A stretch of 64,000 bases of DNA from Octopus bimaculoides (lineage: Eukaryota), in NCBI RefSeq assembly GCF_001194135.2, contig NC_068994.1, positions 2,601,143 through 2,665,142 of the forward strand, given 5' to 3'. This document shows positions 10,103 through 64,000 of the stretch, in pieces. Below the pieces are notes generated by a model, which worked only from the letters and a program-made list of their open reading frames with translations, had not been told where the DNA came from and made no database searches. Both the position numbers and the translations under genes were made by a program. How positions within the stretch are numbered: the first letter of the stretch is position 1; every line of letters starts with the position of its first letter.

Positions 10103-10253
10103 AAGTACAGTGAACCGGTTGAAGTAACATCTTATGGTGAACTCCGGGAACTAGAAAATTACAAGAGCGACACTCTAGTAACCTACAAGGACACTGGCCG
10201 AAGTTGGATAGATAGAGATATTGGATATTATGAAGAAATACCAGCAATGTCAG
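10103..10253 (+). CDS. Protocadherin cytoplasmic exon (151 nt, phase 0 to phase 1) of the upstream paralog
   Basis: cacag|AAG...TCAG|gtagtg. Reads KYSEPVEVTSYGELRELENYKSDTLVTYKDTGRSWIDRDIGYYEEIPAMS, with 23/50 aa identity, identical length and identical phases to exon 61442-61592. Confidence 0.88.
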
Positions 10254-10424: not shown

Positions 10425-10543
10425 ATCTCTATAGTGCCTGTCCTGCTATATCAACCAGCTACGAGAGACAACATTACCAAGATAGATTTCTTAAACCCCT
10501 AGAAAGACAGCTGTCCCTGACACCTGAAGATATCATTAACTGA
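10425..10543 (+). CDS. Terminal coding exon of the upstream protocadherin paralog
   Basis: Polypyrimidine acceptor 'cttacttgtatattttccag|' after a 171-nt intron. A phase 1 join gives (D)LYSACPAISTSYERQHYQDRFLKPLERQLSLTPEDIIN*, open to TGA at 10541-10543. Confidence 0.75.
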
Positions 10544-18499: not shown

Positions 18500-20881
18500 A
18501 TGTTTGTAGAATACTTATCTATATTATTGCTTCAATTCTGCTTATGCATGGACATCACCTACCACGTCAACGAAGAAGACAGTCCTCACACCTATATAGG
18601 AGACATTGCTGTTGACTCTAACTTATCACACCCTCTCACACATCAACAACACACTCTCATTACATTTACACAACTACAAAGGACAGTCGAGAGTGGTTCT
18701 CACTTATTTAATGTCACCAACTCAGGAAAACTATACACTACTCAAACACTGGATGCTGAGTCTCTGTGTACGTACAACAAGGAATGTTCCAGAATAGTTA
18801 AAGTAGCAGTGAGGAAAGGAAAGACATTTATGAAGATATTAAAAGTGAAAGTAATAATAGAAGACATTAATGATAATCAACCAGCATTTCCCACCAAAGA
18901 GATTTCATTACAATTTGATGAAGGTGATGGGAAGGGAATGAAAAAGTCCATTCCTAATGCAATTGACAAAGATGTTGGATTTCATAATCACATGATAAAA
19001 TACTTTTTAGCAAAATCTGAAAGTGAACCATTTTCATTATTAGTAACTAGAAGAGCTGATGGAATCTCAATGTTAGAAATTGTTTTAGAAGAGAGGCTAG
19101 ATAGAGAAATGAAGGAAATCTATAACATAAATGTTGTGGCTAAAGATGAGGGATCTCCACCTAAAGAGAGTGTTTTAAAAGTTAGAGTAATAATTAGAGA
19201 TGAGAATGACAATCGACCTGTATTTTCTAGAAATATTTATAATGTATCCATCAAAAACACACATAATAAGAATATTCCAATCCTCACACTTTCATCGACA
19301 GATTCTGATACAGGAGACAATAAGAAAGTTTCTTACTACTTTAGCCCGATGACTTCAGACATTGTTAAAAGACAGTTTCAAGTAGATCACTCTACTGGCA
19401 AAATTTTTTCAACAGAGAGTTCTAGTCTAGATACTAAATTGACATACCAACTCTACATAGAAGCTAGGGATGGAGGCAGCCCTCCTCTCAGTTCTATAGC
19501 AACAGTTCTGGTGAATGTTATCAACCAACACAACAATCCTCCATCTATTGATATTGATTATGTTTCTGCCCTCAATCACAACACAGCTACCATTTCGGAA
19601 GATACCAAAGTTGGTAGTTTCATTGCTTATGTGATGGTCACTGATAATGATGTTGGGTATAATGGACAAGTCAGCTGTAGCCTCCATCATGATATATTAC
19701 AGCTGGTGTCCATGGGGTCAAAAGAATTCAAAATAGTTATGAAAAGTTCTGTTGACAGAGAGACACAAGATTATTATAATGTTTTGATTACTTGTCAAGA
19801 TGAAGGTTTCCCATCTCTTAAAACAGAAGAAATGTTTTCACTCCAGGTCACTGATGCCAATGATGTACAACCACAATTTAACAAAGACATGTTTAAATTT
19901 TTAACTTATGAAAATGAAAAACCACATTTTCCTATTGGCTTTATCAATGCCACTGATCCTGACCTGGGACTGGCTGGTAAGCTAACATATTCCCTATTGC
20001 ACAAGAAAAGGAATCCAATTCCCTTTCAAATTTCTAACTATGGCTTTATTTCAACAAACCAGTCTTTAGACAGAGAACACAGAGATTTCTATGAGTTTGA
20101 GGTTTTTGTGAAAGACAATGGAACACCATCTCTGAATAACACAGTGAATGTTGAAGTGGAAGTATTGGATAGAAATGATAATGCTCCATATTTTACATTT
20201 CCTAGTGTTGACCCTTTTACACTTGATGTCCACTATCACCCGCAAAGTAAGAACGACATCACAGTTTTGAGAGCTTCAGACAGAGACAATGGAAATAATG
20301 CTTTTCTCAGGTATGAAATCATTTCAGGTAATGAGAGACAGCTGTTTAAACTAGATTCGTTCACTGGTGTGTTATCCTACTCTCGCACAGTTTACCAAAA
20401 TGATGCCGGATCCTATGAGCTTGAGTTTGTTGTGAAAGACAGTGGTACTCCAATTCTATCAGCAACAACAACTGTCTCTTTGACACTGACTGTTAGTAAT
20501 AAGACGTCACCAATGTTCACAGCTGTCCACTTACAGTCTGGTAACAATCTCAATTTAACTTGGGTAATTATCATAGTAGTAGCAGCTGTAATAATATCTG
20601 TGGCTATTGTGGTTTCTGTGACACTGTGCTTTATTAGAGGCACCAATACTCGAAATAATTCTGCAAGGGTTCGTGAAAATTCTCAATACCATTCAAGAGC
20701 AGAAATGAAACAGTTAATATATCAAACAAACAATCCTATAGTTGTGACAAAAAACCCAGAAGAGATGCTCAGCAATAATAGTCCATCAATTATATCTTCA
20801 AGCCAGTTTTACCCTGAGGAAAACTCGAGCAAAGACTGGAAAACAGCTACTCTAGTCCGGACGCTTCCAAAATCTATAACG
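18500..20881 (+). CDS. Protocadherin large exon: signal peptide, 6 cadherin repeats, TM helix, proximal cytoplasmic tail (cephalopod expanded type)
   Basis: 794 codons. Hydrophobic N-terminus; repeated xE, LDRE/DAE, DxNDNxPxF, DxDxG and AxDxGxP motifs; EC1 C-X5-C (C90, C96) typical of protocadherins; TM at aa ~686-712. ACG|GTAAGT phase 0 donor at 20881/20882; the unspliced ORF runs on to a stop at 20968. Confidence 0.97.
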
Positions 20882-21091
20882 GTAAGTTTATTTTCTTTCT
20901 ACTACATAATATTTGGTTTGTATTTCATAGATTTCTCTTTTGACAAATTACTAATTTATATTTATTAATTCTATATTACTATTGGTGAACAGGATTTTCC
21001 AGAGTTACAAAATAATAGAAGTTTTCAATAAACCTCGATGACATGTATTCATTGCTAGAAACATTGCAATTTCAACAATTATAAGGAAGAA

Positions 21092-35229: not shown

Positions 35230-35540
35230 AAACACATCATCATCATCATCATCATCAACAACATCATCATTGTCACCATTATCATCATCACTTAACGTCT
35301 GCTTTCCATGCTTGCATGGGTTGGACAAATTTGACTGAGGACTGGCGAACCAGATGGCTGCACCAGGCTCCAATCTGATCTGGCAGAGTTTCTACAGCTG
35401 GATGCCCTTCCTAATGCCAACCACTCCAAGAGTGTAGTGGGTTCTTTTACATGCCACCGGCACGAGAGCCAGTCAGGCGGTACTGGCAACAGCCACGCTC
35501 AAAATGGTGTTTTTTACATGCCACTTGCACAGGAGCCAGT
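35230..35540 (-). mobile_element. Young RTE-type LINE 3' end with (GAT)n tail
   Basis: Reverse complement of the family 3' UTR, with hairpin units running into the gap; CpGs largely retained. Confidence 0.88.
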
Positions 35541-36284
35541 NNNNNNNNNNNNNNNNNNNNNNNNNNNNNNNNNNNNNNNNNNNNNNNNNNNNNNNNNNNN
35601 NNNNNNNNNNNNNNNNNNNNNNNNNNNNNNNNNNNNNNNNNNNNNNNNNNNNNNNNNNNNNNNNNNNNNNNNNNNNNNNNNNNNNNNNNNNNNNNNNNNN
35701 NNNNNNNNNNNNNNNNNNNNNNNNNNNNNNNNNNNNNNNNNNNNNNNNNNNNNNNNNNNNNNNNNNNNNNNNNNNNNNNNNNNNNNNNNNNNNNNNNNNN
35801 NNNNNNNNNNNNNNNNNNNNNNNNNNNNNNNNNNNNNNNNNNNNNNNNNNNNNNNNNNNNNNNNNNNNNNNNNNNNNNNNNNNNNNNNNNNNNNNNNNNN
35901 NNNNNNNNNNNNNNNNNNNNNNNNNNNNNNNNNNNNNNNNNNNNNNNNNNNNNNNNNNNNNNNNNNNNNNNNNNNNNNNNNNNNNNNNNNNNNNNNNNNN
36001 NNNNNNNNNNNNNNNNNNNNNNNNNNNNNNNNNNNNNNNNNNNNNNNNNNNNNNNNNNNNNNNNNNNNNNNNNNNNNNNNNNNNNNNNNNNNNNNNNNNN
36101 NNNNNNNNNNNNNNNNNNNNNNNNNNNNNNNNNNNNNNNNNNNNNNNNNNNNNNNNNNNNNNNNNNNNNNNNNNNNNNNNNNNNNNNNNNNNNNNNNNNN
36201 NNNNNNNNNNNNNNNNNNNNNNNNNNNNNNNNNNNNNNNNNNNNNNNNNNNNNNNNNNNNNNNNNNNNNNNNNNNNNNNNNNNN
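35541..36284. other. Assembly gap (744 N)
   Basis: Seen directly. The long X-containing ORFs in the track are artefacts of this gap. Confidence 1.
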
Positions 36285-36545
36285 CGAGATCATTGCCAGT
36301 GCCCCTGGACTGGCTTGTGCGGGTGGCACATAAAAGACACCATTTCGAGCGTGGCCGTTTTCGTGCGGGTGACACGTAAAAGCACCCACTACACTCTCTG
36401 AGTGGTTGGCGTTAGGAAGGGCATCCAGCTGTAGAAACTCTGCCAAATTAGATTGGAGCCTGGTGTTGCCATCCGGTTTCACCAGTCCTCAGTCAAATCG
36501 TCCAACCCATGCTAGCATGGAAAGCGGACGTTAAACGATGAAGAA
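36285..36545 (+). mobile_element. Young RTE-type LINE 3' end
   Basis: Hairpin unit 'gccagtgcccctggactggc', core 'gtaaaagcacccactacactc...gttaggaagggcatccagctgtagaaac', end 'ggaaagcggacgttaaacgatg'. Confidence 0.88.
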
Positions 36546-61441: not shown

Positions 61442-61592
61442 AAGTACAGTCAGCCAATAGTTGTGACATCTAGCGATGACCCTGTTATGATTCCTAACTA
61501 TCTCAGTGATTCATTGGCAACTCTAAGAGACAGTCACCTTACTTTGGATGAGCAGTATAATGGACTTTATGAAGAAATACCTGCAATGTCAG
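61442..61592 (+). CDS. Protocadherin cytoplasmic exon (151 nt, phase 0 to phase 1), predicted next coding exon of the 18500 gene
   Basis: caacag|AAG...TCAG|gtaatt. Reads KYSQPIVVTSSDDPVMIPNYLSDSLATLRDSHLTLDEQYNGLYEEIPAMS; paralogous to 10103-10253 and in frame with the donor at 20881. Confidence 0.85.
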
Positions 61593-62640: not shown

Positions 62641-63629
62641 TAACTGATAAACTTATAAGTATTTTCTTTTTCAAATTTGATATTTGCAAATGCCAGAGAT
62701 TTTATTAGATTTTCCACATTATTTTATGAAAAATAAATTAATCAATGAAGCATTAACTTTATTTAGAAGCAGTTTCAGACATTCTTATACTTGTTCTAAT
62801 TGTGACACAGTGTAAGCATCTATCCCTTCTGGCGGGTTTTTTATACGAGATTTTACACTAAATTTTGTTTAAGATTTTGAGTTATGAAAGTTTATCTAGT
62901 TTCATATGATGTGATTTAATTAAGTCAGTGTGGTAGAAAGTTCAATGGAGGAGTATAGATCTAGCCTGCATTAGTAAAGTTGGATTATCATTATCATAAT
63001 CATCATCACCATCAGTCCGTTGTCTAAAACCCCATTTGTGTTATCAAGTGAGCAGCCAGCTTATTGATTTCTACATATAAGCTGTGGAAGACAGGTAAAT
63101 AAGTTTATTCTGTGGAAAAGAAATAGTGATGCAAAAATCAGAGAAAGTTATTGGTATAAAAGTAAATTGGTAACTTCATTGGATGTATGAGTTTTATAAC
63201 GTAGCTGTGCAGTGGACAGCAAACAGTAGTAATATATATTAATCACATAAAAGAGCTGCTGACAGACTGCTTCTATGATCAGATGTCTCTCGTTTAATTC
63301 TTTATCCTAACAAGTATCTCAAAGGCTACAGAAGCACCTAATTTGATTCAAGATCTGAACTCTTTTGTTTCCTTTTACTCTGTGAAGTATTAAAGTACTT
63401 TTCTACTCTAGCATCAACTCTTGTCAATGTTTCATTTGTATTCTTACATTGTCTTACAGTATAATCTTAAGATATTTTTTTGATATACTTTATTTATGAC
63501 TAAGTCATTAATTTATCTAAAATTTATGTCATGGAGTACAAGCTTTAGTAAGCCACTGACAAAAAAAGGTTCTAAGTTTCACAGGGTAATTATTGATTAG
63601 GTCTGTCAACAAGGGCTTCAAATAGATTA

Positions 63630-64000
63630 GATTCCTTTGTAGTATGTGGTGAGAATGGAGGAGGATAGCTGCGTGAAAAAGTGCCACACCCTAACAGTTG
63701 AGGGAACCCGTGGAAGAGGTAGGCCCAGGAAGACCTGGGCTGAGGTGGTGAGGCAAGACCTTCGTACATTGGGCCTCACCGAGGCGATGACTACGGACCG
63801 AGACCTTTGGAAATGGGCTGTGCGTGAGAAGACCCGGCAAGCCAAGTAAGATCGTTGCCAGTGCCCCTGGACTGGTTCTTGTGCGGGTGGCACATGAGAT
63901 GCACCATTTTGAGCGTGGCCGTTGCCAGTACCGCCTGACTGGCTCCTGTAGGATTTTCGAGCGAGATCGTTGCCAGTGCCCCTGGACTGGCTTGTGCGGG
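63630..64000 (+). mobile_element. Young 5'-truncated RTE-type LINE: ORF2 C-terminus and start of the 3' UTR (runs off the window)
   Basis: VRMEEDSCVKKCHTLTVEGTRGRGRPRKTWAEVVRQDLRTLGLTEAMTTDRDLWKWAVREKTRQAK* (GRGRPRKTW motif), intact frame, CpG-rich, followed by tandem hairpin units. Confidence 0.92.

Follow-up and report, generated by a model that had tools for sequence, protein, structure and literature searches.

About 170 protocadherin genes are found in octopuses, with the nervous system as their main site of expression, and the locus described here raises the question of what a short peptide in the cytoplasmic tails of these adhesion receptors might do. The window, by which is meant the whole stretch of 64,000 nucleotides (nt) that was analysed, lies on contig NC_068994.1 of Octopus bimaculoides (positions 2,601,143 to 2,665,142 of the forward strand) and holds parts of two protocadherin genes, called here gene A and gene B. 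One short exon of each, exon A and exon B, encodes the string Y-E-E-I-P close to its 3' end. Both exons are coding sequence that is already annotated, and the point at issue is the motif. The finding, a tyrosine-based linear motif in the tail of an adhesion receptor, is a robust observation; what would read the motif is a matter of probability and is weighed below.

A shared block in two diverged exons

Exon A is bounded by a ...ccacAG acceptor and a GTagtg donor, and only its first frame is open, both remaining frames being interrupted by stops. Translation in frame 1 gives KYSEPVEVTSYGELRELENYKSDTLVTYKDTGRSWIDRDIGYYEEIPAMS with 1 nt left over, and the exon therefore leaves in phase 1. The translation of exon B is KYSQPIVVTSSDDPVMIPNYLSDSLATLRDSHLTLDEQYNGLYEEIPAMS. 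The initial annotation of this DNA described a pair of 151-nt exons, 23/50 identical, both ending in G-x-YEEIPAMS, and this was borne out when the exons were recounted and translated: 23 of the 50 residues are identical by direct count, and the longest identical block is the terminal YEEIPAMS, which G-x precedes in both. The same is true of their description as paralogous protocadherin tail exons, as a tblastn comparison of exon A with exon B gives E = 2.8e-10 and both lie within annotated protocadherin genes. A degenerate pattern for YEEIP, TAYGARGARATHCC, occurs twice in the window, compared with 0.00 occurrences expected from 100 shuffles.

The motif across octopod protocadherins

Relatives were gathered with exon 1 of gene B, a query that is unbiased for the tail, and the best 120 of the 2,387 sequences returned were classified. 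All are protocadherins of O. sinensis, O. vulgaris, O. bimaculoides and Argonauta hians, with 54-96% identity, and a motif of the Y[E/D]EI type is present in 89 of these 120 nearest octopod proteins; the concern that it might be absent from most paralogs does not apply to them. The tails fall into five classes, with Y[E/D]E[I/L]P in 82 proteins, Y[E/D]EI followed by a residue other than P at +4 in 7, and EYSNYxPNIPP at the place of the motif in a clade of 13, while 11 are short isoforms without the exon and 7 are truncated or aberrant models.

In 52 distinct 22-residue contexts, numbered from the tyrosine, position +1 is E in 49 and D in 3, position +2 is E and position +3 is I in all 52, and P occupies +4 in 46. 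Beyond the motif there is A or G at +5, M, V or L at +6, and S at +7 in 22 of 49 contexts. On the upstream side -1 is mostly Q, H or P and -2 mostly K, R or G, acidic residues (D or E) are found at -4 in 50% and at -6 in 37%, and W stands at exactly -8 in 24/52; the flanks as a whole are highly divergent (52-70 distinct contexts). The acidic residues said to precede the motif are indeed there in exons A and B, which are close paralogs, but not family-wide, where -1 and -2 are mostly non-acidic, and G-x-YEEIPAMS likewise describes these two exons but not the family, across which AMS is variable. Since neither AMS nor the acidic lead-in generalises, both being confined to the exon A/B paralogs, the family motif is restated as Y-[E/D]-E-[I/L]-P.

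Across 115 octopod cytoplasmic domains, aligned without selection, this motif is the best-conserved part of exon 2, with I at 98%, E(+2) at 91%, P at 88% and Y at 83%. Within an alignment of 42 proteins, picked for having the motif, the only cytoplasmic columns without variation are Y837 and E839. None of the 52 E-E-I contexts lacks the tyrosine, and Octopus and Argonauta orthologs share it.

Selection on the peptide

Conservation of this kind could in principle be imposed at the nucleotide level, by a purine-rich GAAGAA exonic splicing enhancer, by the 5' splice-site context of a tiny exon beside very long introns, or by gene conversion between tandem paralogs. Such an explanation could draw on the position of the motif, which in all copies examined lies 1-25 nt from the donor, on the identity of TATGAAGAAATACC in exons A and B, and on the use of ATA for Ile in 8/10 subfamilies, compared with 31% ATA usage in these genes. 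Codons were compared in the DNA of 14 tail exons from 10 subfamilies, however, and every motif codon has silent variants (TAT/TAC, GAA/GAG, ATA/ATT and CCA/CCT). One copy, O. bimaculoides gene L008, reads TAC GAA GAG ATT CCA, three silent changes that leave the same peptide, and the YDEIP clade has GAT GAG, which disrupts GAAGAA yet retains the acidic residues. An enhancer would also allow purine-rich K, R and G codons, and these were never observed. Pairwise same-codon fractions at the motif are 0.64-0.80 for Y, 0.64 for E, 0.64 for I and 0.53 for P, and equal those taken at identical residues of the ectodomain exon in the same genes (0.72, 0.67, 0.59 and 0.53, respectively). To the question of whether synonymous sites are equally conserved the answer is thus no: motif codons vary as codons do at conserved residues elsewhere in these genes.

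Splice-site constraint and gene conversion also fail to account for the pattern. The donor lies 10 nt past the Pro codon in most copies and 1 nt past it in one, a distance that ranges from 1 to 10 nt, and the donor could account for no more than about the last 3 nt. Amino-acid identity outside the motif is 46% in the rest of the exon (the remainder of exons A and B), as against 60-66% in the ectodomain; no conversion tracts are evident, and the divergence of the flanks within the same exon argues against gene conversion. Exon A and its O. vulgaris ortholog share 98.7% nt identity, compared with 87.5-92% for the flanking intron and untranslated region. Two decayed O. vulgaris tail pseudo-exons with in-frame stops (L002:3986-4117 and L002:22471-22626) have parted from the motif, one of them reading ...KH-EEIPGVS, where the Tyr is lost, and the other ...NFNFIEKYSKF, where the motif is gone. 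Because splice site, GAAGAA enhancer and gene conversion all fail to explain the conservation, it is the peptide that is selected, and purifying selection maintains the motif at this level. The nucleotide-level explanation is largely refuted and we consider it very improbable.

Setting of the motif within the tail

The AlphaFold2 model, for which 42 sequences were aligned, has six confident beta-rich cadherin domains and a transmembrane helix at 686-715, followed by residues 713-863 with a predicted local distance difference test (pLDDT) score of 24-29 and no secondary structure. The motif lies within this low-pLDDT region, about 120 amino acids (aa) C-terminal to the transmembrane helix, and as modelled it is a short linear motif in a disordered, accessible cytoplasmic tail. 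Neither the whole proteins nor the tails matched any cytoplasmic family in Pfam scans, the tails giving no hit even at E <= 10.

Other blocks are conserved in the 115 octopod cytoplasmic domains. RCNN is juxtamembrane and is joined by EMRQLIYQTNNP and FYPE..E.W; exon 2 opens with KYSQP and also carries NYxSDTL and, about 8 residues ahead of the motif, a Trp block, [ST]G[HQR]xW[ST]E; and QDTY[LV]xP is found at the C-terminus. The initial annotation spoke of an exon dedicated to the motif, which overstates the case, because the 50 residues of exon 2 hold several conserved blocks, KYSQP, NYxSDTL and the Trp block among them. Conserved tyrosines occur in several of the other tail blocks. Y-x-N is found within 18 residues C-terminal to the motif in 19/70 distinct contexts (e.g. 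YEEIPGVSDQNIYKNN and YDEIPTESEYTNDN), which come from tails of the P0036-P0053, P0056-P0080 and P0023/P0057 clades, and the motif-less clade has SEYSNYxPNIPP. As pYxN is the Grb2-type SH2 (Src homology 2) consensus, this suggests that octopod tails may bear tandem tyrosine motifs.

Candidate readers of the motif

Among the readings considered, the one ranked first is that YEEIP acts as a phosphotyrosine switch for the docking of SH2 domains, which we favour tentatively and at somewhat less than an even chance. Starting from the motif as observed, from its family-wide conservation and selection at the protein level, from its location in a disordered cytoplasmic region and from the isoforms described below, we infer a phosphorylation event, an SH2 partner and a downstream effect. 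The motif tyrosine would be phosphorylated in an adhesion-dependent manner, and pY-E-E-I would then dock a Src-class (group I) protein through its SH2 domain. The best-matching partner would be a Src-family kinase, with Fes/Fer-, Syk-, Nck- or Vav-type SH2 domains as alternatives. Docking would bring in or switch on tyrosine-kinase signalling where protocadherins make contact, and exon 2 skipping would yield isoforms that lack the motif.

Both exons of the window conform to the sequence of a Src-class SH2 site, Y-[E/D]-E-[I/L/V], and the AlphaFold2 model places the motif where such a site is expected, in a cytoplasmic and disordered region. The reference high-affinity ligand of the Src SH2 domain, used as a standard probe, is EPQpYEEIPIYL; the half-maximal inhibitory concentrations (IC50) are 0.5 uM for pYEEI, 0.8 uM for pYEEL and 1.1 uM for pYEEV, and changes at E+1 or E+2 reduce affinity (PMC2888578). 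These measured values agree with the earlier statement that pYEEI is the optimal Src-family SH2 ligand, and substitutions in octopod tails track the affinity order I > L at +3. The invariant acidic residues at +1 and +2 therefore favour a Src-type SH2 pocket, since a reader of YxxPhi (Phi being hydrophobic) does not need them. Src-family kinases act at the adhesion sites of molluscan neurons, as with apCAM and Src in Aplysia (PMC2150837, PMC4569314), and among vertebrate protocadherins Pcdh-alpha binds Fyn, as cited in PMC6339937, and Pcdh-alpha/gamma bind FAK/Pyk2 (PMC7339444).

The motif tyrosine is also the site of a difference between two O. vulgaris records. The brain-transcriptome protein QBA31128.1 and the genome-predicted CAI9732486.1/XP_029645236.1 (852 aa; P0164 vs P0271) differ solely by Y843C, which turns GQYEELPGM into GQCEELPGM, and the O. 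bimaculoides and Argonauta orthologs have Y. Adenosine-to-inosine (A-to-I) RNA editing would produce just such an A>G change, here from TAY to TGY, and Y843C could be editing, a single-nucleotide polymorphism or an error; the hint of editing at the motif tyrosine is this one difference in one O. vulgaris transcript. A much broader proposal is that Y[E/D]EIP might be the common intracellular output of the independently expanded octopod repertoire, a phosphotyrosine dock that would functionally replace the vertebrate constant region and that neurons could turn off either by leaving out exon 2 or by editing the tyrosine codon from TAT to TGT (A-to-I), which replaces Y with C. From the sequences compared here we regard this as quite unlikely.

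Several points weigh against SH2 docking. Matches to SH2 consensus motifs are often non-functional. An optimal Src kinase substrate has a hydrophobic residue at -1 according to published specificity screens, and the residues at -1 to -3 of the motif (Q/H/P, K/R/G) do not fit such a substrate. Tyr is not the best-conserved position, coming behind I, E(+2) and P in the 115 unselected tails, and the 13-member clade has EYSNYxPNIPP instead of the motif. Tyr is missing from the P0215 clade, which has CEKLP conserved in three species, from the P0251 clade, which has VQELQ, and from non-octopod tails, which carry IEEMT, IDEMP or SEEVP after the Trp block. As these homologous blocks lack Tyr, an E-E-Phi-P block can evidently persist without a phospho-acceptor.

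The motif may alternatively be a YxxPhi sorting signal, in which unphosphorylated Y-E-E-I would bind mu2 of AP-2 (or other AP complexes) and so govern endocytosis or trafficking, and which phosphorylation might turn off in the way that L1CAM YRSL and CTLA-4 YVKM are turned off. Y-x-x-[I/L] is found in all 89 motif-bearing proteins and lies in a cytoplasmic tail, accessible and disordered in the AlphaFold2 model; no residue is better conserved than the one at the Phi position (I 98%), and exon skipping would give a trafficking-distinct isoform, in parallel with the spliced RSLE exon of L1CAM. The consensus leaves +1 and +2 free, yet E/D and E are invariant there in 52 contexts and P(+4) is found in 88%, and we hold a sorting signal to be unlikely. 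The E-E-Phi-P variants without Tyr count equally against YxxPhi and against SH2, and are among the facts that a tyrosine-independent ligand would accommodate. Its core would be x-E-E-Phi-P, possibly with the upstream [ST]G[HR]xW[ST]E, bound without phosphorylation by, for example, an LC3/ATG8-type reader of [W/F/Y]xx[L/I/V] or another peptide-binding domain, and Tyr would be the preferred aromatic only. This would suit the higher conservation of E(+2), I and P than of Y, the persistence of CEKLP across three species of one clade and of IEEMT, IDEMP and SEEVP after the Trp block in non-octopod sequences, and the Trp 8 residues upstream that accompanies the motif (at exactly -8 in 24/52). The main octopod radiation, however, retains Tyr in every distinct E-E-I context and in Octopus/Argonauta orthologs, and because the replacements seen (C, I, S and V) are non-aromatic, 'any aromatic' is not the rule; we think a tyrosine-independent ligand rather improbable.

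Some further motif classes were set aside. The immunoreceptor tyrosine-based inhibition motif, [ILVS]-x-Y-x-x-[ILV], has the required I, L, V or S at -2 in 6/70 contexts, and the spacing of the corresponding activation motif (two YxxL/I spaced 6-12) occurs in 0/70. Neither the WAVE-interacting receptor sequence (WIRS) nor the protein phosphatase 1 (PP1) motif RVxF ([RK][VI]xF) has a match in either window protein.

Divergent clades and other cephalopods

In divergent octopod clades, which have 42-51% identity to P0001 where measured (42-sequence alignment), the place of the motif is taken not only by CEKLP and VQELQ but also by YEELP, YEELL, YEELS and YETLP. An element [DS]SG[HR]GW[ST]E precedes the block in most of them, and none is found with YEELS (P0192) or YETLP (P0168). 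A further search was dominated by giant FAT-like cadherins; 13 protocadherin-length matches (852-1,162 aa) were inspected, and 9 of the 10 looked up were octopod. The non-octopod picture rests on transcript assemblies, with Acanthosepion pharaonis PCDHD1/2 as the nearest named relatives.

Many non-octopod, probably decapodiform, tails have a different tyrosine motif, [VI]IY[EQR]EI[EG], upstream of the Trp block (P0322, P0327-P0329, P0355, P0357, P0389 and P0414, and in genomic sequence L009:12380-12480). As exon 1 of a named A. pharaonis gene ends ...DVIYE before GTAGGT, the motif of this cuttlefish spans the junction of exons 1 and 2, which single-ORF (open reading frame) gene models read through; a stretch of 10 kb next to exon 1 did not contain exon 2 of this gene. 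Sites of the YxEI type have thus come up in the octopod and the non-octopod lineages, which expanded independently, at different positions of the tail, and this counts in favour of the SH2 reading. The Trp block is itself seen in cephalopod tails such as that of P0265 ('TDSGHGWSEGDTGH'). In the form DSGHGWSEGD it may resemble the delta-protocadherin conserved motif CM2 (DSGKGDSD...), a likeness for which the Pfam scans were negative and on which no argument here relies.

Host genes and isoforms

Gene A is O. bimaculoides XP_014767711.1, 'protocadherin beta-15 isoform X1', which contains the exon A peptide exactly. The large exon 1 of gene A falls immediately outside the window, on the upstream side, and the last exon of the gene is supported by tblastn, being the same as the C-terminus of XP_014767711.1 (P0449). 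The sole long ORF of the window, at 18500-20968, is the protocadherin exon 1 of gene B, identical at 794/794 residues to XP_052828885.1 and XP_052828886.1; its donor, ACG/GTAAGT, follows codon 794 at 20881 in phase 0. Gene B has the hallmarks of a protocadherin, with a signal peptide, about six cadherin repeats in one large exon, a single transmembrane segment and a tail that is not of catenin type, and Pfam assigns its protein Cadherin x5 plus Cadherin_2. Coordinates are collected in Table 1.

Table 1. Exons and motif copies of genes A and B, in positions of the window (a slash marks a splice junction)
Feature	Position	Strand	Description
Exon A	10103..10253	+	151 nt, penultimate coding exon of gene A, phase 0 in, phase 1 out
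Motif A	10229..10243	+	codons TAT GAA GAA ATA CCA = Y-E-E-I-P
Gene A last coding exon	10425..10543	+	split codon G/AT, then ...DLYSACPAISTSYERQHYQDRFLKPLERQLSLTPEDIIN, stop TGA 10541-10543
Gene B exon 1	18500..20881	+	794 codons; signal peptide, six cadherin repeats, transmembrane helix, proximal cytoplasmic region
Exon B	61442..61592	+	151 nt, AG/GT-bounded, penultimate coding exon of gene B
Motif B	61568..61582	+	codons TAT GAA GAA ATA CCT = Y-E-E-I-P

The 865-aa isoform of gene B (P0445) joins exon 1 straight to exon B (...LPKSIT/KYSQPIVV...YEEIPAMS/G...), and exon B is therefore exon 2 of gene B, reached across a 40.5-kb intron. Within this intron (20882-61441) tblastn with 66 tail queries found no further protocadherin exon, and apart from an N gap there is no ORF >150 aa. 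The last exon of gene B was looked for within the window and was not found. At 35530-36330 and 63620-64000 there is an assembly gap (a run of N) with copies of a repeat on its flanks, and the repeat recurs at the 3' end of the window; the copies have similar translations (...RSLPVPLDWLV...) and are probably an interspersed element.

Exon B is skipped in an 807-aa isoform of gene B (X3 in O. bimaculoides), found among the RefSeq models of O. bimaculoides, O. sinensis and O. vulgaris, in which the splice from exon 1 passes over exon B and leads to ...ESTISTQVCPQIL (P0441, P0442 and P0443). For gene A, the O. vulgaris ortholog has a 797-aa isoform (P0448) without exon A. These isoforms are predicted RefSeq models, and they suggest that splicing can remove the motif; as exon 2 is 151 nt long, skipping it shifts the downstream frame.

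The window aligns collinearly with chromosome OX597827.1 of O. vulgaris, their nt identity being about 88-94%. In the O. vulgaris, O. sinensis, O. bimaculoides and Argonauta loci the layout is one-to-one, each large exon having its own copy of exon 2. A shared constant exon, as in a cluster of the vertebrate type, is excluded, exons A and B being separate, diverged copies that each lie 3' of their own large exon.

Comparison with known systems

The nearest parallel to the octopod motif is hamster polyomavirus middle-T, in which EPQpYEEIPIYL has the same five-residue Y-E-E-I-P string, and the substitutions tolerated in octopod tails (I > L, acidic at +1 and +2) parallel the measured Src SH2 affinities (PMC2888578). 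Phosphorylation and SH2 binding are experimental for middle-T, whereas for the octopod motif they are predicted from sequence, the residues before the Tyr differ, and the octopod host is the tail of an adhesion receptor. A cellular analogue of pYEEI is FAK pY397, YAEI. Another neural adhesion molecule, L1CAM, has Y-RSLE, encoded in part by a neuron-specific mini-exon, whose AP-2 binding is regulated by Src phosphorylation; this is likewise a YxxPhi motif that depends on splicing and may be read as either a sorting signal or a phospho-switch. It differs in being YRSL where the octopus has YEEI, and in an exon of four residues where the octopus skips one of 50 aa, and the octopus function is a candidate drawn from sequence.

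Vertebrate clustered protocadherins couple through their tails to non-receptor tyrosine kinases and actin regulators (Pcdh-alpha/CNR-Fyn; FAK/Pyk2; WIRS-WAVE) (PMC6339937; PMC7339444). As in those clusters, one intracellular element is common to many variable ectodomains in octopus, but unlike vertebrates, which use shared constant exons, each octopus gene owns its copy of exon 2. Between vertebrate clustered protocadherin tails and those of octopus we found no sequence similarity, and no Pfam cytoplasmic family, WIRS or PP1 motif in common. The delta-protocadherin motifs CM1-CM3 are, as in octopus, conserved short blocks in a disordered protocadherin tail. The initial annotation recognised neither CM1-3 nor WIRS, and the Pfam scans gave no CM match and the motif searches none for WIRS or PP1, in agreement with earlier authors, who did not find CM1-CM3 or the vertebrate tail motifs in octopus (PMC6339937). 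In the papers searched no YEEI-type site was reported for vertebrate protocadherins.

Implications

Our literature search found no paper with both 'protocadherin' and 'YEEI', or with YEEIPAMS, although papers outside the search may mention them. The octopus-specific motifs that Styfhals et al. took from Albertin et al. 2015 are ectodomain, transmembrane and PP1 patterns only (PMC6339937), and the intracellular partners of octopus protocadherins are stated there to be unexplored (PMC6339937). Given the vertebrate precedent of Fyn and Pcdh-alpha, coupling of octopod protocadherins to the Src family would be a new site and not a new principle.

The motif offers a specific and cheaply testable lead on signalling by protocadherin tails, and one that is under protein-level selection in four octopod species. 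If it proves to be a sorting signal or a tyrosine-independent ligand instead, it is still the most constrained site of the tail. If SH2 docking is true, the protocadherin expansions of vertebrates and of cephalopods would both reach non-receptor tyrosine kinases, and would do so through unrelated sequences and a different gene architecture.

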